A stretch of 64,000 nucleotides of DNA from Ophelia neglecta (Eukaryota): NCBI GenBank assembly GCA_965285935.1, contig OZ260667.1, positions 54,188,001-54,252,000 of the forward strand, written 5' to 3'. Below the pieces are notes generated by a model. It made no database searches. It worked only from the letters and a program-made list of their open reading frames with translations, and was not told the DNA's origin. The translations under genes were made by a program, and so were the position numbers. Positions 21,646-33,400 of the stretch are shown one piece after another. Position 1 is the first letter of the stretch; each line of letters starts with the position of its first letter.

Positions 21646-22317
21646 CGAAGGAACAAAACAAAATATGAATTACTTTAACAGCTAGGGTATTATAGTGCCT
21701 CTTCCGTGTTTACTGCTTGGTTTTTCATGCGTTCTTGATATGTTGTGAACTTGGTCAGTACTTGGTTGAATTGTAACAGAACTATAGTTCTCGTATTATT
21801 CTTTTCGAGATTTTAAAAAGCATCAACTTGCATGGACAAGCAGTATGACATCCAATTTCTAGTTATAGCTTTCGCCCTTTTAATGAGGCCCGTATAATGT
21901 GCATGAATGCCAAGTGAAAACTTGCAGTTCTACCATTCGCCATTGATCAAAAAAAGATCTGACATGTGAACTACTATTTGTTGCCTATGATGTGTAGGAT
22001 AAGCGATATAATTGACGTAAATGAAAATAATGTACTACTACCATGGGACAATTTATGACCTATTATTCTGTGTATTTTTTACATGGTTATATAGCATATA
22101 CTGCTAGGCTTCAACTGTTTGATAATAATAGTATTTCATAAGGAGCTGACTATATACTAGGAAAAGATTACCACTTGCTGTTGCCCAAAGCTTTTGAACA
22201 AACACTTAATACTGTACCTCTTTATGATACAAATAAAGCATATTTGAAATGTACTGCATTAATCATATTTATAACAGAAAACACACACAAATAGACTACA
22301 AGGAATGTCAGTTTAGG

Positions 22318-22738
22318 TGTAACAGTAGCTGCACTACTAATGCACTACTTATTTTAAACTACCTAGCTTTCTCTGATATTAGTTTGCGCAGCTAGCGCTT
22401 GGTGGCTGCACCAGTTTTTGATTTTGCGTGGTACGCCAGATGGCCAGTGAGATGGCTGTCCTCCTTCTCGACGTGTCAACCTTTTAAGGAGATTTTAGTC
22501 GAAAGTAAAGGGACCAAGGAGGTAATTAGTGTTACGTTTAATAACTTTAATCGGAAGCCATAGATATTACTAATACCAGCAGGTGTAAGCTGTATTTCAT
22601 GGTCATATTGTTTTGTTGTAGTTTTCACGGTGACAACGTATGGTTGAAATAAACGCTGGAAAGGCCTATGTCATCAGTTGAGTCTCCTTGTGTGTCTTAA
22701 TACGTCCCGGGTAGACATCGCCCCTGTCTGCCCTAACA
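22318..22738 (+). repeat. 5' LTR
   Basis: TGTAACAG...CCCTAACA; no difference from the 3' LTR on manual comparison. TATA-like TTTTAAG at 22482-22488, GT-AG intron candidate 22522-22621, AATAAA at 22648-22653. Confidence 0.97.
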
Positions 22739-22752
22739 GTGAAAACTCCTTG
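22739..22752 (+). other. Non-tRNA primer-binding-site candidate
   Basis: GTGAAAACTCCTTG follows the LTR directly and lacks TGG. It is the exact reverse complement of CAAGGAG|TTTTCAC (22515-22521 joined to 22622-22628). Confidence 0.7.
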
Positions 22753-23570
22753 AAAGCAGTTCGACGTATATAGCCAGCCAGTATCCTTGCATGTACATGC
22801 AGGCTCCATGCTAGAAGTTTAGACGTATTTGGGCTGGTGGTAACGCTGGTGCCTGTGGAGTGATCGTGTGACCTACATTCGAGCCGCCGCTGTGTCTGAG
22901 TGTGGACCCGTACATGCAGCAGCCGGGCCGGACCGTATACAGGCGTGACCAGGTTATATGTACTCTGTAGGAGCGAGCTTTGTGAGGCCAGCCGTCTGAG
23001 GAGCCTGTATCGTCGGAGGATTGCTGTATTTAAATGAGGGTAGAATGCGTTGCACTTGCACACTGGTGGTATTTACTGTAAATCTGGTGATTTTGTGTTC
23101 ACATATATAATATGTATTCCACGCTATGTAAAGCATATACATGCATGTCTACACTACTTGACCACTTCAGTTCAGTGTTTATAGCTGTAATTTAGTTGAA
23201 AATTTACTCACTAGTAAACTGTCACTGAGTGTAATTGTATATTTGTGAAATTGTAAATTACATGTGACTGAGCTTTATGTCCACATAGGTAGACTACAAA
23301 GTAGTATTGTGGCTTTCATAATTTTGTGTGTTTTATACTTGTTGTATCATTGCAGTGTCTCTGCATATCATTTCTGCTTGTAGACTGAGTGACAAATTAT
23401 ATTGCAATACTGTCTTGATTACCTTTGCGGGTCACCTTTGATATTTTTGTCTGCTTGAGTTGCCTGATTCATCTGCATTGTGTTTCTGAGTGTCTATTTT
23501 GTATTTGATTTTGAGATATGACCTGTATTTCCAGCAGTGTATATTGTGTACCTGGGCATATCGGTTTGTA

Positions 23571-26500
23571 ATGGCAACTGCTCATGACCAGGATAATTTG
23601 ACACAGGCTAGTGGGGGGCCTCAAACCGAAAATGTGTCCCGCGAAGATCGCGAACGCGTGCGTACTCTCACAGAAAAGGGTGTGGCTTATAATTTAGATG
23701 TCTCGAGGAGAAATTACCGCTCTGCTATATCCGCATGGCGCAAGGCTGCTGGACAGCTATCCACGCTGCTCACTGAAACAGAAGACATTGCCACTTTGAG
23801 GAGAAGTCGCACTCAGGTAGAGGAAATATTGGGAGTGGTGGAAGCTGAATATAACAAATATTGCAGTATACTTTCTCAAGCAGATCCCGATGAAAAGGAA
23901 AGATTATTTGATCAATATGATGCTATTGAAAGGGATCATTTTAACCTCATGGGTCTGTGTACTAATGTGATGCTTGACTTGGAGGAAGCTGGTTCTATGA
24001 TTTCCAAGCGTAGTTCTACGTCAAACCGTGGTCATGGCTCTCGCGTTTCACACAGATCACAAGAGTCCGCTGTTTCCATGATGTCAAGACAAGCAGATAT
24101 TGCTGCCAAAGCAGCAGCCCTGAAAGCTGAACTGCGATACATTGAAGCTGAAGCAAAGCAGCGTGCAGAAGCAGAGAGGCTTAGGACCTTAAAGGAAATA
24201 GATGTGGCTGAGGCAAGGTTCAAGGCGATAGCGAAGCTAGCCAGTGCTACCACACAAGAGGTTTCAAAACAGCCCAAGCTTCCTGATGTACCTGACGGGA
24301 GAAAGTTGCTTCTAGATCAGTATTTACAGAGTGTGGAGAAAAAAGAGAGCTTACCCGACAAGGCGGTACAAGACGTGGTGCCCAGTCGAGATGACTTACC
24401 TAATGATGATCAGCTGCCACAGAAAGTGACGCCTGCTCCTTGTGAATATTTGCCAATTGAGTCCTCGGAGCATGGTGGGCTGCAGCTTCCGGAAGAAGAG
24501 GATACAGGAGGCTCGCAGGTGCCAGAACGTTGTTCATCTGCTGCTCTGTCTCAGGTAGGCAGTAGGGGTGACCTGGTCCACTTGCTGAGGTCTGTTTTGA
24601 ATGCTGGTAGATTGCCCATGCCTGAACCTGGTGTTTTCACAGGCGACCCATTGGAGTACCCTGGCTGGAAGGAATCCTTCGGCACCCTAATCGAGCGTAA
24701 AGGCATACCACCCCCAGAGAAGATACATTTTCTGAGAAGATACCTGGGTGGACCTGCCAAGCAGGCTGTGGAGGGCTTCCTATTGTTGTCAAATGGTGGA
24801 GCCTTTGAAGAGGCAAAGGCTCTGTTGGATCAAAGATATGGCGATCCATTTCTCATCGCTAAGGCATTCCGGGACAAGTTGGAACGGTGGCCCAGAGTCC
24901 CCCCGAGAGATGGCACAGCCCTGCGATCGTATGGCGACTTCCTAGGTCAATGCGAGGTAGCCATGAAAAGCATCGATAGCTTGAACGTTCTCAACGACGA
25001 CAGAGAGAATCAAAAGATGCTGCAAAAGCTTCCTGACTGGGTGGTCGCCAGATGGGGCAGAGTGGTATTCGAGACGAAGGAAACCAGTGGAACTTTCCCA
25101 ACCTTCCATAAATTTGTAAAGTTTATTACAAAGGAGGCTGACATCGCATGTGATCCCGTGACATCACTTCAGGGCCTCAAGGTGAAGGACAGGGTAGCCG
25201 ATAGTGACGGATACGCTAAGAAAAAAAATACCCGAACTTCAGGTGCTCGCGCATTGACAACGTCAGCTGGTGAACTCAAAAAGAAGACAGAAAAGGTGGA
25301 TATGGATCCCTGCATCTGTTGTGGAAAAGGGCATGACGTGGATACCTGCAAGGTGTTTCTGAAGAAGTCCGTAGAAGAGAGAAAGGATATGGCCAGGGAT
25401 TGTGGTCTTTGCTTCGGATGTCTGAGAACTGGGCACCGATCCAAATTCTGTAAGAATAGGAAGACTTGCCAGATATGCTCCAAACGGCATCCTACTTCTC
25501 TGCACGGCAATACAGGGCAGCCGGCAAACGTATCTCAATCCGGAGCAGGCTCATCGAGGAAGTCCGTCGCTGGTGAGACTGATGGTGAGTCCAGTATCCT
25601 AAATAAAGCCGACCAGGCTGTAGCCTCAGTGGATGGGCCTACGCAGCCAGGATATCCAGTTGGTTGGTCGACAGCTGATGAGACTGCAGCCCAGGTACAT
25701 TGGTCGGGCAAACCGCGACCACATGTTTCTCAGTTCAACAGTGTTGGTCCCGGCAGGAAGTGTTCCTTGACTGTCCCTGTTTGGGTGTCTCACAGTAACG
25801 GCCCTGGGGTGGAAGTCCTTACATACGCTCTTCTCGACACGCAGTCGGACACAACGTTTATTCTCCAGGAGACTTGCGACTTGCTGGGACTTCAAGGTCC
25901 TCAAGTTACTCTCCTCTTGTCCACTATGTCTGCTGAGAGTCAAAGGGTGGAAAGCAGCCGTATCGAGGGGCTGAAAGTGCGGGGTTTCGACCAGGAGACA
26001 TCAAAACAGATCTCACTACCTCCAGCATATACTAGAGAGATTATGCCCGCGAACCTTTCCCACATCCCGACTCCAGAGCTAGCAAAGCAGTGGCCACACT
26101 TATCGAGAATCGCTAACAAATTAATGCCGTTAAGCAACTGCGGGGTGGGGATGCTGATTGGCTACAATTGTGCCAGGGCTCTCACACCTAGGGAAGTCAT
26201 TCCACCGGTTGGGAATGGTCCATTTGCTCAGCGCACTGACCTTGGTTGGGGGATCGTGGGAATGATGGACCCAGATAACCAAGAGGATTGTTTGAGCGAC
26301 AGAATTGGGGTCAGTCATCATGTTGGTCAGTTGTATGGTTCGGTCGTCTCATTCCGAACCAGTATCAAGGAAGAGTTGACTCCCTTCCAAGTGACGAGCT
26401 TATTGGAGTCAGATTTTCGAGACACCAAGGGTGAGGACAAGCTCGTTTCTCTTGAGGATCCCAGTTTCTTGGCCAAATTAGAGAAAGGTATCCATCAGGA

Positions 26501-29500
26501 TAGAGACCAACACTACGAGATACCATTGCCATTTAGAGGACCAGAACCAAGCCTACCAAACAACCACAACATGGCATTCTATCGTATTAAGCAACTAGAG
26601 CGCCGCTTCAAAGGAAACCCTGAATTTCTCCAGGACTACACTTCATTTATGAATGACCTGTTAGATAGGGGATATGCGGAAAGGGTGCCAGAGACCCAGA
26701 TCACTAGAGAAGATGGTCACTTGTGGTACATACCGCACCATGGTGTGTATCACGCCAAGAAGAAGAAGATACGTATAGTGTTTGATTGCAGCGCCAGGTT
26801 CCGGGGTCAGTCCCTAAACGATCACCTGCTGCAGGGACCCGATCAACTGAATGCTTTAGTTGGAGTATTGTGCAGATTTCGTGAAGAGCCAGTGGCGTTC
26901 ATCTGCGACATAAAGCAAATGTTTCACCAATTTCGTGTAAGCCCGGAGCACCGCGACTACCTACGTTTTATTTGGTGGGATGCTCAGGGTACTTTGGTGC
27001 CGTATCGCATGAAAGTTCACATCTTTGGAGCAGTGTCCTCTCCAGGATGTGCAGCTTATGGCCTACGTCAGGTGGTCAAAGATCATGGCAGCGAGTTTGA
27101 TCCTGAGGTTTCGGAATTTGTGCTGCGAAATTTCTATGTGGACGACGGACTGAAATCTGTCCAGACCTCAGATGTAGCTGTGAGTCTGATCTCACAAACA
27201 AAAGCGCTCTGTGCTAAGGGAGGCCTACAACTGCACAAGTTTGTCTCAAGCTCAGCCAGTGTAATCGACGCAGTCCCTGAAGAGGACCGTACAACTGGGC
27301 TCGCGAGTATTGAGTTCTCAGACAATGCGATGCCAATCGAGCGAGCTCTGGGAATCCAATGGTGCATCAGTTCTGATTCCTTTCCGTTCCGTATAACACT
27401 GAAGGACAGTCCTCTTACCAGACGCGGAGTATTGTCAACTGTTTGTTCGGTCTATGATCCGTTAGGATTCATAGCGCCTATTATTCTTGTTGGAAAACAG
27501 ATCCTACAAGAAATGTGTAGGTCTCATGCAGATTGGGATAGCCCACTGCCAGACGAGTTGAGACCTAAATGGGAAAGATGGAGAGAAGGACTGTTCTTAC
27601 TCCAGTCTCTCAATATTCCCAGGTGCTACAAACCACAAGGGTTCGGAGAACTGAAATATGTGCAGTTTCATAACTTCTCAGATGCTAGTCTTACTGGCTA
27701 CGGACAGTGCTCCTACATTCGTCTCGTTGATGTCTCAGATCGTGTCCATTGCTCTCTAGTCATGGGCAAGGCCCGTGTTACGCCTCTGAGACAAATCACT
27801 GTCCCGCGTCTTGAGCTAAATGCAGCCGTTGTCTCTGTTAAAGTCAGCTGCAAACTTAGAAGGGAGCTAGACTACAGCGATGCTTCACATTGGTTTTGGA
27901 CTGACAGCAGGGTAGTCCTGGGTTATATTGGAAACGATGCACGTCGTTTCCACATTTTCGTCGCCAACAGAATTCAGCTCATTCGGGATTCCTCCGAGCC
28001 ATCCCAGTGGCATCATGTGAGTACTGACCAAAACCCAGCGGACGAGGGTTCCCGTGGTATGAATCCTGTGGAGTTTCTTGAAAGGTCCAGGTGGCTGACA
28101 GGTCCAGACTTCCTTTGGGAACAGGACATCCCGGCTTTACAAGAAGACCATGCTGGACAAAGTGTTTCTCAGACCGACCCTGAGATAAGAAGTGCTGCAA
28201 CACACACTACTCAGTCGTTACCTGAAACTGACATGCTACGTCGCCTCACACGTTTCTCGGATTGGCATAAGTTGAAGAGAGCCGTGGCTGTCTGTCTCAA
28301 GTTGAAGTCAATCCTGCTTTCCAGGTCTCGTCAAGGAAGAACCACGGGTGAGGATAGGTCTACTTACCTGCCAGTCCAGACGAAGGACCTCATCTCGGCT
28401 GAAACGGAAATTGTAAAACTTACCCAGAAAGAGTCCTTCCTGTGTGAACTCGAGCTGTTAGAGTCACTTGATGTCAGGGATGATGCAGACAGAAGAAGCA
28501 CACAGATTCGCAAGAAGAGCCTAAGAAAGTCCAGTTCTCTATACAGATTGGACCCCTTCCTGGATGGTGACGGCGTCATGCGAGTTGGCGGAAGATTGCG
28601 TCTGTCTGACTTCTCCACAGGTATCAAACACCCTGTGATTCTCCCAAGAAGACATCACATTACTACACTGGTGATCCGGTACTTTCACCAGCTTTGTGAG
28701 CATCAGGGCCGTGGTCTCACAACCAATACCATTCGTTCCAATGGTTTCTGGATTGTTGGTTGTAGTGGAGCCGTGGCAGAGTACATTTCCAAATGTGTAG
28801 TTTGTCGGAAACTACACAGCCAAACACAGCTACAGAAGATGGCAGATCTCCCACAAGATCGTCTCGATCCCTCGCCTCCATTTACTTATTCGGGAGTGGA
28901 TCTCTTTGGTCCATGGCGGATCAAGGGGCGTAGAGAAGTTAAGAGATACGCCGTATTATTTACCTGCTTAGCCTCACGGGCAGTGCACGTGGAGGTCGCT
29001 AGCTGGTTGACAACAGACTCATTCATCAACGCCCTTCGTCGGTTTTTTGCATTGAGAGGGCCCATCAGAGAGCTACGATGCGACAGAGGAACCAATTTCG
29101 TGGGGGCAGACAATGAGTTGAGAAAGTCTGTGGAAGAAATGGACACAGACCAGATAAGGAACTTCCTGCTTCAAAGGGAATGTGACCTGTTCGACTTCAA
29201 TATGAATTTCCCACACTCTAGCCATATGGGCGGAGTGTGGGAACGTCAGATTCGTTCCATACGGCGAGTTTTGGATGCTCTCTTGAATCACGCCGGCCTG
29301 CAGTTAGATGATGAGTGCCTACGCACGCTTATGGCAGAGGCGGCTGCAGTTATCAACAGCAGACCCCTTACGGTGCAGAACCTGAACGATCCAGCTTCTG
29401 CAGAGCCACTCACCCCAAATCACCTCCTCACTATGAAGTCCCGTAGCCTTCTACCGCCTCCAGGAGTCTTCCCGCCAGAAGATCTCTATGCATGGAAACG

Positions 29501-29789
29501 TTGGCGCAGGGTACAACACCTGGCGAACGAATTTTGGCACAGATGGAGGAGAGAATACCTCCAAAACCTGCAGGTGAGACAACGTTGGTGTCGGCCTAGC
29601 AGGGATATGGCCGTGGGAGATGTTGTGATTATCAAGGAGGAGGCACCACGAAATCAGTGGCCCATGGCAATTATCAAGGAGGTCTTCCCTGGATCGGACG
29701 GTCACGTCCGCAGGGTCAGACTTAAGGTTGGCGACACCTATTTGGAACGGCCAATTCATAAGGTTGTCCTGTTGGTTGAGAGCAATTAG
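23571..29789 (+). CDS. BEL/Pao Gag-Pol polyprotein (2072 aa from the first ATG)
   Basis: Uninterrupted ORF. Gag core FTGDPLEYPGW; three knuckles CICCGKGHDVDTC, CFGCLRTGHRSKFC, CQICSKRHPTSLH; protease LLDTQS; RT DIKQMFHQ and FYVDD; RNase H FSDAS, PRLEL, WTDS; integrase HHCC plus GVDLFGP, CDRGTNF, GGVWER. The track's start at 23490 is a GTG. Confidence 0.96.
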   Translation: MATAHDQDNLTQASGGPQTENVSREDRERVRTLTEKGVAYNLDVSRRNYRSAISAWRKAAGQLSTLLTETEDIATLRRSRTQVEEILGVVEAEYNKYCSILSQADPDEKERLFDQYDAIERDHFNLMGLCTNVMLDLEEAGSMISKRSSTSNRGHGSRVSHRSQESAVSMMSRQADIAAKAAALKAELRYIEAEAKQRAEAERLRTLKEIDVAEARFKAIAKLASATTQEVSKQPKLPDVPDGRKLLLDQYLQSVEKKESLPDKAVQDVVPSRDDLPNDDQLPQKVTPAPCEYLPIESSEHGGLQLPEEEDTGGSQVPERCSSAALSQVGSRGDLVHLLRSVLNAGRLPMPEPGVFTGDPLEYPGWKESFGTLIERKGIPPPEKIHFLRRYLGGPAKQAVEGFLLLSNGGAFEEAKALLDQRYGDPFLIAKAFRDKLERWPRVPPRDGTALRSYGDFLGQCEVAMKSIDSLNVLNDDRENQKMLQKLPDWVVARWGRVVFETKETSGTFPTFHKFVKFITKEADIACDPVTSLQGLKVKDRVADSDGYAKKKNTRTSGARALTTSAGELKKKTEKVDMDPCICCGKGHDVDTCKVFLKKSVEERKDMARDCGLCFGCLRTGHRSKFCKNRKTCQICSKRHPTSLHGNTGQPANVSQSGAGSSRKSVAGETDGESSILNKADQAVASVDGPTQPGYPVGWSTADETAAQVHWSGKPRPHVSQFNSVGPGRKCSLTVPVWVSHSNGPGVEVLTYALLDTQSDTTFILQETCDLLGLQGPQVTLLLSTMSAESQRVESSRIEGLKVRGFDQETSKQISLPPAYTREIMPANLSHIPTPELAKQWPHLSRIANKLMPLSNCGVGMLIGYNCARALTPREVIPPVGNGPFAQRTDLGWGIVGMMDPDNQEDCLSDRIGVSHHVGQLYGSVVSFRTSIKEELTPFQVTSLLESDFRDTKGEDKLVSLEDPSFLAKLEKGIHQDRDQHYEIPLPFRGPEPSLPNNHNMAFYRIKQLERRFKGNPEFLQDYTSFMNDLLDRGYAERVPETQITREDGHLWYIPHHGVYHAKKKKIRIVFDCSARFRGQSLNDHLLQGPDQLNALVGVLCRFREEPVAFICDIKQMFHQFRVSPEHRDYLRFIWWDAQGTLVPYRMKVHIFGAVSSPGCAAYGLRQVVKDHGSEFDPEVSEFVLRNFYVDDGLKSVQTSDVAVSLISQTKALCAKGGLQLHKFVSSSASVIDAVPEEDRTTGLASIEFSDNAMPIERALGIQWCISSDSFPFRITLKDSPLTRRGVLSTVCSVYDPLGFIAPIILVGKQILQEMCRSHADWDSPLPDELRPKWERWREGLFLLQSLNIPRCYKPQGFGELKYVQFHNFSDASLTGYGQCSYIRLVDVSDRVHCSLVMGKARVTPLRQITVPRLELNAAVVSVKVSCKLRRELDYSDASHWFWTDSRVVLGYIGNDARRFHIFVANRIQLIRDSSEPSQWHHVSTDQNPADEGSRGMNPVEFLERSRWLTGPDFLWEQDIPALQEDHAGQSVSQTDPEIRSAATHTTQSLPETDMLRRLTRFSDWHKLKRAVAVCLKLKSILLSRSRQGRTTGEDRSTYLPVQTKDLISAETEIVKLTQKESFLCELELLESLDVRDDADRRSTQIRKKSLRKSSSLYRLDPFLDGDGVMRVGGRLRLSDFSTGIKHPVILPRRHHITTLVIRYFHQLCEHQGRGLTTNTIRSNGFWIVGCSGAVAEYISKCVVCRKLHSQTQLQKMADLPQDRLDPSPPFTYSGVDLFGPWRIKGRREVKRYAVLFTCLASRAVHVEVASWLTTDSFINALRRFFALRGPIRELRCDRGTNFVGADNELRKSVEEMDTDQIRNFLLQRECDLFDFNMNFPHSSHMGGVWERQIRSIRRVLDALLNHAGLQLDDECLRTLMAEAAAVINSRPLTVQNLNDPASAEPLTPNHLLTMKSRSLLPPPGVFPPEDLYAWKRWRRVQHLANEFWHRWRREYLQNLQVRQRWCRPSRDMAVGDVVIIKEEAPRNQWPMAIIKEVFPGSDGHVRRVRLKVGDTYLERPIHKVVLLVESN

Positions 29790-29999: not shown

Positions 30000-30420
30000 T
30001 GTAACAGTAGCTGCACTACTAATGCACTACTTATTTTAAACTACCTAGCTTTCTCTGATATTAGTTTGCGCAGCTAGCGCTTGGTGGCTGCACCAGTTTT
30101 TGATTTTGCGTGGTACGCCAGATGGCCAGTGAGATGGCTGTCCTCCTTCTCGACGTGTCAACCTTTTAAGGAGATTTTAGTCGAAAGTAAAGGGACCAAG
30201 GAGGTAATTAGTGTTACGTTTAATAACTTTAATCGGAAGCCATAGATATTACTAATACCAGCAGGTGTAAGCTGTATTTCATGGTCATATTGTTTTGTTG
30301 TAGTTTTCACGGTGACAACGTATGGTTGAAATAAACGCTGGAAAGGCCTATGTCATCAGTTGAGTCTCCTTGTGTGTCTTAATACGTCCCGGGTAGACAT
30401 CGCCCCTGTCTGCCCTAACA
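30000..30420 (+). repeat. 3' LTR
   Basis: Copy of 22318-22738, preceded by purine-rich AAGGCGAGG (PPT candidate) and followed by the TSD TTAGG. Confidence 0.97.
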
Positions 30421-33400
30421 TTAGGACTGATCGACAAGTCGCCATCTACAACCTAGAAATTTTGCGCAAAGGAATGTCTGCGAATATACTTTTTAAATAT
30501 TTGTGACTGATGGAAATAGCTCACTCCTGGCCAACCACAAAAGTCTAAAAAACTTGGGTATGGTTTTATGTATCAGATTTTTAGCTATACACAGGTGTGG
30601 GGGAGGGAGTGAGGGTATGGGATGGGAGAGCGCTTACGTCAGACCTACTTTGCCCACGTGATTCCTTAATTGTGGAATTTTTATTGCCAATCCGTGAGCA
30701 AGCAACTACCAACCATTAATCACCTCCAAAATATAATGTGTAATGTTCTGGCAATTATCATCCTTATGCAAATAATATTGTGTTGCATTCAATGAGGTTA
30801 ATGGTGTTAACAATATAAATTTTAAAGAAAATTCTATATCCTGGTAACAAAATAATTTGCCGGCTAAACTTTTATTGTTTAGAAAAAAATGTAATCAAAT
30901 GTCGGACAATTGTGAAATGCTGGAACAAGACATTTGCACTTACGTTCGTTCAACTATCTATGCTCCTTCTCCAAGAAGTCATATGTCCAGTCATATGACT
31001 GCCGTGTGATGACATGAATCAGGGGGGGGGGGGGGCACTATTAGTTATGTTTATACAAGTTCACAACCACTATTGGATATTTACCCCTTACTACACACAT
31101 CGCATTTAATCCTTGATTTTTTAATATTGCCTTTTTGCGGAGGCAGGTACTTCGGATAATGGGCATACTACGAGTTTCCCTATATGCTGTAGAGACAGCA
31201 TATAGAATAAGTCTTGTTGGAGGGGGGGGGGGGGGGGGGTGGAGGATACACATGCTATCACCAGTCATCTGGAGTGGTTAGGAACGTTTCTGCACTGAAC
31301 GCGCGCAATTTACTTTACGTTATTCATATATATATATATGTATTGTTTAATCTCTGGCATATTCGATATACCGGCAATTTACACCAGCCCGCCGCATGAA
31401 TTTGGTTCCTGACCTCTCCTTTGCCATGATTTATGGACCCACAGGAGCATAAAGGCCGTTTAAGTTCAATACTTATTGCAAAGGGGGACAACAACACACC
31501 GCATGGATGAGTACGCACAAGGCGACTTGTTTATACTTTATACAATGGTGAGTATATCCTCCATATAGAGGGCCCGGGCGAGAGATCTAGTGATACACAA
31601 ACCACACCGCAAAGATTACATTTTATGTTGGTTCGAACCTTATGTCCATGGGACAGAATTAAACAATTCCCCCCCCCCCCTTACACAGGAACGCTCTCAG
31701 CAGGCCTATATACTTGTCTCCTAACCATGTGACGGTCACGTATTTGTCTCCTTGTATATCATTAAGGTCATAGGGACGGAATTCTTTCTTTAGAAACAAC
31801 GGGATGGGCCTCTGGTGTGTGTGGTGGGTGCATGGGGGGTTTGGGGATAGCGGGATGGGCGGGAGCCCTCCTAATGTGTCGATTCCTCGCACTACTGAGT
31901 GTAAACGGCCTGTTTTTTCTGTTCCCAAAACCGTACCCCCATATCGACATCTTCCAAAGGGTGCCCTGACCCTATGGTGTCTCTCCTACCTCCGCCGCCG
32001 AGGGCACAGTGAAACAGGTGACTACCACTACAAATCACAACTTAAAGTGCATAAAACTATGACAGATTTATATCTGTATTGCGTTGCCTTGTGAGCGAGG
32101 CTCCCTTTAAGAATTGACTAATCCGGTTGGATGGTTTGTTTTTCACGGAAAGCGAGCTAGGAATGTAAGGTAGGTCCCAGGCCTAAACGCTAGTTATTAT
32201 CAAATGTTAAATTTACCAACAAACCGCCAATTGACAGGCTTGATCGATAAATGGTGTAAACTTGAAGATGTGTTTTACTGGCACATGTCCATTTATGTGT
32301 CACTTAAATTTGGTAGCAAATAAATGGGCCTTAATAAGTTTCCATGAGTTGGCCAACTTCTTGGACCAGTGTAGTAGATTCCGGTGCTGACCTATTTAGC
32401 TGCTGTGATGACGTCCTAGCCCATGCCCAGATCGGACACTTATATGATCTTATATGGCCAACGCACTATTTGTTTTGCTGTGTAGAGACACGTGACTGGG
32501 AATTCAGGGTGATTATTGCAGATATACGCAGGCTGTGAAATTTCCGCCTGATATTTCAATGAAAAGACGCTATGTTTTCTCCATGTACCGATATAGTCCG
32601 AAAATCTCTGACTATTTTGGCATATGTAGGTTAAATGACCAACATCAAATCCAGGCGATCCGTTAGAAAATACACTAAAAAGCCATTTAACGGCAGAGAT
32701 TCTCGGACTAGTACCGATCCACACTTAACTACACCTCTTAGTCATACTGCTCCTTGATTCGGATACATAAAAGAATACGGGATGAACTTAGGTCTAGGCT
32801 CCTTAGAGGGAGCTATATAATTTGCATGGGAGGGGAGGGACACTAGTTGGTAGCAAATAAATATGTCTGATATTCGATGAAAAAACAACTCGGTTGATAA
32901 TAGATATATTTTTTGCTTTGCGTATCGAGAGATAGCTGGAGACAAGAGAAATGGAAAAAAACCGTCTCGCAACTCATCCACGCTGGAATTCATTGAATTG
33001 CCGTTCGAAAAAGTCTAGAAACGGTAGTTATTGAATGATTGTGGTTAACACAGGTAAAGCCCCGAAGATAAGGTTTCTATTTAGATTGGAAGCAGCAGGG
33101 AATTATTATTTTTTAGACTAAAGTAAATGGGTTCTAAATATGTATAAAATATACCATGGTTGTCACTGACTATTTATAGACATTGGTTTATCACATATCT
33201 TGAAGATAACCAGTATTTAATTTAAAGGCCGAAGTGGGTGTTGGGTTCTGTTCAAATATATGCCGAATTTCATAACTTTTATTTCAACAATTTAGGTAAA
33301 TGCTTCATGAAAAAACATGCCTACCAATGCATCTTAAACATAACGTCAATTTGAGGTCGGATTTTATATGATAAAATTTTATTTGATTTGTATGATAGGC

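Follow-up and report, generated by a model that had tools for sequence, protein, structure and literature searches.

The locus considered here lies in the genome of Ophelia neglecta (GenBank assembly GCA_965285935.1, contig OZ260667.1), in a stretch of 64,000 nucleotides (positions 54,188,001 to 54,252,000, forward strand) that is referred to below as the window and to which all coordinates without a locus name refer. It carries a young, apparently complete BEL/Pao retrotransposon, bounded by two LTRs of 421 nt (22318-22738 and 30000-30420, + strand) that are 100% identical, begin with TGT and end with ACA, and are flanked by a 5-bp target-site duplication TTAGG (22313-22317 and 30421-30425). 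Between the LTRs, a single open frame of 2099 codons (23490-29789, +) encodes gag and pol, with Pfam matches to DUF1759 (gag; PF03564, residues 383-522), Peptidase_A17 (PF05380, E 9e-44, residues 1310-1473), an integrase core (rve, residues 1813-1873, below the Pfam cut-off) and DUF5641 (PF18701, residues 2003-2095). These domains, in the order gag-PR-RT/RH-IN, are those of BEL/Pao (Belpaoviridae) and not those of the Ty3/gypsy chromovirus lineage, and the related elements carry the same domains. About ten copies that are 98-100% identical lie in the 762-Mb assembly. Variation within the family is too small to test pairing: one copy (L009; L numbers designate the individual loci that were compared) has a T-to-C change at position 9 of the site described below with no compensating change in the LTR, and the 5' LTR of another (L013, G000:C7:93642964-93643424, compared with L020) has a deletion of 21 nt inside the spacer that its 3' LTR lacks and that leaves both spacer boundaries intact.

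The sequence directly after the 5' LTR, GTGAAAACTCCTTG (22739-22752, +), does not contain the TGG expected of a site that pairs with a tRNA 3' end, and is considered here as the putative primer-binding site. Its complement is found in the LTR in two pieces, CAAGGAG (22515-22521, +), which pairs with positions 8-14 of the site and is followed by GTAATT, and TTTTCAC (22622-22628, +), which is preceded by TTGTTTTGTTGTAG and followed by a G. The two pieces flank an intron-like spacer of exactly 100 nt (22522-22621, +), which begins with GTAATT, ends with a T-rich tract and TAG, and is not unusually structured; its copy in the 3' LTR is at 30204-30303. Once joined, the two pieces are the exact 14/14 reverse complement of the site and the pairing ends flush with the LTR end, whereas without joining the match is 9 nt (22620-22628). 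The LTR also contains a TATA-like TTTTAAG (22482-22488, +), about 33 nt before the upstream piece, and an AATAAA polyadenylation signal (22648-22653, +) 20 nt after the downstream piece; an AATAAA in this region was seen in the ten related families of this genome that were inspected by eye. Every coordinate given in the initial annotation holds, and its observation was confirmed.

To estimate how often such an arrangement arises by chance in this LTR alone, we generated 4000 dinucleotide-preserving shuffles of the LTR: none gave a flush joined GT..AG complement of 14 nt, 2 gave one of 12 nt or more, and a contiguous flush match of 9 nt or more occurred in 13. One such hit could still turn up in a very large scan, and the decisive evidence is therefore comparative.

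We first considered whether a host RNA could serve as the primer, as the initial annotation had itself proposed to check. The 14-mer (the reverse complement of the natural site) has 13 exact hits in the genome, of which 9 are the sites of the family itself and 4 are unrelated. ARAGORN detects no tRNA gene in the window or at these four hits, and a search of Rfam finds nothing in positions 22000-23600. Hits with one mismatch are close in number to the control count (325 versus 283). Among them, pairs of one-mismatch variants (AAAGGAGTTTTCAC and CAAGGAGTTGTCAC) recur about 4 kb apart on the same strand at many places of contig C1 of the assembly (G000), for example at 824213/828262, 2354691/2359112 and 3966052/3970018, and represent another repeat family.

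Ten further BEL/Pao families of the same genome, with 49-57% pol identity, were then collected and their LTRs defined. All end in ACA and are followed by GT(G/A)AAACT-like sequences whose continuation differs between families. In every one, 80-145 nt before the LTR end, a T-rich tract plus YAG is followed by 6-7 nt exactly complementary to the first bases after the LTR, and further upstream each LTR has a site of the form xxAG|GT, the last 4-7 nt of which continue the complementarity into the variable part of the site. In several families a second helix of 4 bp follows after a bulge of 1-3 nt. A pattern search of the genome with AGTTTYACG-N65-95-CAGTRAAACT gave 39 hits against 0 for the reversed control, a count that rests on the pattern alone.

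Protein relatives of the element occur in echinoderms, bivalves, a limpet, a sea anemone and a crab. Loci from a sea anemone (L062), a pearl oyster (L063), a crab (Scylla, L064), the assembly GCA_029980105.1 (L059) and several Logan runs (L054, L066, L068, L070) show the same layout, and a scan of metagenome contigs added 16 more distinct elements. Altogether, the split complementarity is shared by the 34 other elements examined (ten families of this genome and 24 elements from cnidarian, mollusc, crab and metagenome contigs), although in several of them the extension beyond the shared AG is only 1-2 nt (k = 3-4, and one element of the metagenome set has k = 2), and L149 fits the acceptor half only (k = 2). 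The Acanthaster locus L061 was set aside, no LTRs lying within 5 kb on either side. Some of the relatives have particularities of their own. In L059 (L059:120-240 and L059:8165-8195), the leader starts with about four to five tandem units of about 25 nt, each beginning like the primer site (CAGTAAAAYCCTGCG...), and the downstream primer half, TTTTACGGAG, is duplicated in tandem in the LTR. The LTRs of L064 (L064:162-4252) are about 4.1 kb long and filled with internal tandem repeats, yet keep the same acceptor, primer half and flush site. The clam-associated relatives carry an extra open frame of about 235-239 codons, with no Pfam hit on record, between the primer site and gag (L065:178-885, L069:519-1238, L066:3-512).

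Both halves carry compensatory changes. The downstream half covaries with the first 6-9 nt of the site, as in GTAACAACT/AGTTGTTAC, GTAAGACT/AGTCTTAC, GTAAGAACT/AGTTCTTAC, GTCAAGACT/AGTCTTGAC, GTAGAAACT/AGTTTCTAC and GTGAGATCT/AGATCTCAC, the last three pairs being from the metagenome elements. The partner of the site is therefore encoded by the element, not by the host, and a common host primer does not fit sites that vary in this way between families. For the upstream half, we took for each LTR the longest exact match between the bases preceding any GT upstream of the acceptor and the variable part of a site, and compared cognate with non-cognate sites. In a first set of 19 elements the mean match was 4.68 for the cognate site versus 2.78 for non-cognate sites, and 0 of 300,000 permutations reached the observed sum; in a second, independent set of 16 elements the means were 4.44 and 3.06, and 2 of 200,000 permutations reached the observed sum. 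In the first set, the joined halves give 10-14 contiguous base pairs against 6-9 unjoined. The mean duplex energy, computed for 16 elements with the joined models built from the coordinates, is -17.6 kcal/mol joined, -9.4 unjoined and -9.6 non-cognate. When no GT is required, the best upstream match is followed by GT uniquely in 8 of 16 elements, plus 3 ties, against a background GT frequency of 0.10, but in 9 of 32 elements a longer match without GT exists elsewhere in the LTR. In addition, U3 holds several extra copies of the motif complementary to the variable part of the site in L039 (three ATGAA(C)-type copies, LTR positions about 185-270) and L062 (four (T)CAAG copies, LTR positions about 12-215); only one copy in each is followed by GT, and the others could be decoys, enhancer repeats or duplications. 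On this evidence, pairing between the LTR and the site is essentially certain.

That this pairing is real but is not the primer, serving instead RNA folding, packaging, dimerisation, or the control of splicing or translation while an unidentified host RNA or another mechanism primes, appears unlikely. Priming itself was not observed, and in the window's copy the upstream half can also pair with a second CTCCTTG in U5 (22684-22690, +), which competes with the primer site for this half and wins in the minimum-energy fold; it could be a competitor or a regulatory helix but is not found in most relatives. In the ensemble, the primer-site helix has a probability of 0.38 in the joined model against 0.08 for the 9-bp unjoined helix. 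Against this reading, in the 19 tabulated elements the duplex ends exactly at the first base after the LTR (ACA|), where, in the retroviral replication scheme, the 3' end of a minus-strand primer must lie, and neither a TGG nor a tRNA match was found.

The boundaries of the spacer bear on how the two halves could be brought together. In the 19 elements tabulated, the spacer begins with GT in 19/19 and ends with pyrimidine-AG in 19/19, position -2 before the GT is A in 18/19 and position -1 is G in 18/19, position +3 is A or G in 14/19, and the T content before the AG is 56% versus 35% in the LTR as a whole; the base that follows the downstream half is G in 19/19. The second set also shows the pyrimidine tract and YAG. 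Spacer length ranges from 87 to 688 nt, and the spacers are not unusually structured (mean z +0.38) and their ends do not pair. Five elements discriminate further. Where the base pair at the junction is not AG/CT, the two bases before the GT change to match the site (L039 AC with GT, L059 GG with CC, L074 CG with CG, L110 TG with CA and L136 TG with CA), while the spacer still ends in AG, which then does not pair.

These five elements disfavour plain Tf1-type self-priming by the first 8-9 nt of a transcript starting at the A of the YAG, with the upstream match due to chance, since they leave only 5-7 contiguous nt while the upstream half restores 10-13. A contiguous match of 8-9 nt is present in most elements and YCAGTT resembles an arthropod initiator, but the upstream half covaries with the site in two independent sets and the T-rich tract before the AG would remain unexplained, so that this reading is very unlikely. 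Self-priming without splicing, in which the unspliced leader would pair with the site through both LTR halves in a three-way junction with the spacer looped out and would then be cut after ...AC as in Tf1, is a more serious alternative, although also unlikely. All the pairing covariation fits it as well as it fits splicing, it is consistent with the lack of a junction read, and it accounts without further assumptions for the absence of spacer-less LTRs reported below. However, it does not explain the conserved GT, pyrimidine-AG and T-rich tract, nor spacers of such variable length with neither a closing stem nor excess structure. Furthermore, if plus-strand strong-stop DNA copies the primer, the site would drift towards the complement of the end of the spacer, whereas it matches the upstream half instead, most clearly in L039, L059, L074, L110 and L136; as inferred from the retroviral replication scheme, this is what is expected if a joined primer is copied.

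We then looked for evidence that the spacer is removed, the initial annotation having named reads across 22521/22622 as a test. A search of public runs returned only three runs of one sample, and no RNA run, for this genome; these cover the flanks at low depth and the element at about 10-20 times that depth, and thus behave as DNA, run through the LTR in one piece and show no joint. No read or contig showing the joined junction was seen. The only physical hint, an indirect one, comes from a family found in runs associated with lucinid clams. In SRR26948310, a circular unitig (L070) carries the LTR with ...CCCAAAGAG|GTGATT...(198 nt)...TTTCAG|TTTGAC, whereas in two independent runs, SRR26948412 and SRR14371706, the contigs (L065, L071) are linear, begin exactly at AG|TTTGAC and end exactly at ...CCCAAAGAG, the predicted splice boundaries. 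In a de Bruijn assembly this pattern is what arises when the joined and the unjoined form coexist, and the unspliced three-way junction does not explain it, but the joined words themselves were not seen and the runs may be either RNA or DNA. Proteins of this family also appear in 'Candidatus Thiodiazotropha' symbiont genome bins, and the BEL/Pao polyproteins deposited as proteins of such bins (P0059, P0121) are almost certainly from host (lucinid clam) contigs binned with the bacterium.

Spacer-less, already joined LTRs were also sought, since they should arise if the 3' LTR copy were spliced as well. None was seen among about 20 LTRs of this family, in the DNA contigs, among about 35 relatives or in about 50 related contigs; L046 looked like a possible spacer-less LTR but is not an LTR. 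The splicing model thus requires either that the cap-proximal copy is spliced preferentially or that a spliced RNA primes an unspliced template in trans.

The reading that we favour, with a probability of about 0.6, is that this element and a large clade of relatives prime their own reverse transcription instead of using a tRNA, the primer being encoded in the LTR in two halves, the last 4-7 nt before a GT and the first 6-7 nt after a T-rich tract plus YAG 87-688 nt downstream, which would be joined by removal of the spacer as a spliceosomal intron into a stretch of 10-14 nt (14 here) exactly complementary to the sequence starting at the first base after the 5' LTR. As in Tf1, the RNA would pair with this site and be cut after the conserved ...AC, before the G, and the new 3' end, inferred here to be the last base of the downstream half, would be extended through U5 and R. 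Because in this view the cut primer is not copied into strong-stop DNA, the spacer could be regained from an unspliced 3' LTR copy, or from an unspliced template if the primer acts in trans. What the analysis demonstrates is the split complementarity, its flush position, its covariation and the conserved GT and T-tract-YAG boundaries; that the pairing primes DNA synthesis (very likely), that the spacer is actually spliced (the best-supported way of joining the halves), the position of the transcription start, the cleavage and the use of the primer in cis or in trans are all inferred.

The interpretation offered in the initial annotation is therefore supported only in part. Its core, a self-primer without a tRNA site whose halves lie in the LTR and are joined by removing a GT-AG spacer, is strongly supported by the covariation in 35 elements and the conserved boundaries, and indirectly by the contigs of a relative that break exactly at both predicted splice boundaries in two runs. 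Its proposal that the junction sits at the very 5' end of the transcript, on a tiny first exon, is only inferred, as it rests on a TATA-like word that has similarly placed counterparts in two families (L021, L027), none in most and differently placed ones in others, lying only 18 nt before the GT in L037 and L063; moreover, a very short capped first exon would be an unusual splicing substrate. Its suggestions that the primer could act in cis, or in trans as a short spliced LTR RNA ending at the AATAAA, and that the intron persists only if the 3' LTR copy is unspliced in the template, remain inference.

A bolder reading, possible but slightly less probable than not, is that a whole clade of BEL/Pao elements, found from cnidarians to echinoderms, molluscs and crustaceans, uses the host spliceosome to assemble its primer from a small LTR exon, that splicing of the cap-proximal LTR copy but not of the 3' copy would act as the switch that commits an RNA to replication rather than translation, and that the intron would be regenerated in every cycle because the cleaved primer is not copied into strong-stop DNA. 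Known LTR retroelements start DNA synthesis from a host tRNA or, in the Tf1/sushi group, from the unspliced 5' end of their own RNA, and a primer that exists only after splicing would be a third way. It would tie retrotransposition to the host spliceosome, offer a built-in switch between messenger and replication template, and explain why automated annotation finds no primer site in many marine-invertebrate BEL/Pao elements. The split signature (T-tract-YAG plus 6-7 nt complementary to the first bases after ...ACA, and an upstream xxAG|GT that extends the match) is simple enough to be added to LTR annotation tools.

No description of self-priming in BEL/Pao or of a primer split by an intron was found in the literature collection to which our search was limited, and the main BEL/Pao survey (PMC3118150) does not mention primer sites. 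Self-priming is established for Tf1/Tf2 and the Tf1/sushi group of Ty3/gypsy elements (Levin 1995; Lin and Levin 1997, as cited in PMC5341516 and PMC6934838), where a contiguous stretch at the 5' end of the RNA pairs with the site and is cut off. As in these elements, there is no tRNA site here, the site next to the LTR is complementary to a sequence in the element's own R region, and the primer is presumably released by a cut in the RNA. The contiguous duplex is of similar length, 10-14 nt here and about 11 nt in Tf1. In Tf2, whether the transcript contains the self-primer is regulated, there by choice of start site (PMC5341516). The present element differs in its superfamily and in that the complement is not contiguous in the DNA, only 6-9 nt being so in the elements compared, but is split by a GT...YAG spacer and exists in full only after joining.

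Within BEL/Pao, Achilles of the olive fruit fly is reported with a site complementary to 18 nt of the tRNA-Tyr 3' end (PMC4580426), so that the superfamily is not uniform; gene layout and the position of the primer site directly after the 5' LTR are the same, but in the element studied here the partner is encoded in the LTR and covaries with the site. In retroviruses such as HTLV-1 and BLV, a functional splice donor lies in the R region of the LTR, but the acceptor lies far downstream in the body and splicing produces subgenomic mRNAs, whereas here both candidate splice sites lie inside the LTR and the junction matches the primer site. Finally, GalEa-type Copia elements with a 'conserved hairpin site' and bivalve TRIMs (PMC5445492, PMC6934838) are marine-invertebrate or fungal LTR elements that also have no tRNA site and for which unconventional priming has been suspected, but those proposals involve inverted repeats in the internal domain rather than a split LTR complement with splice signals.
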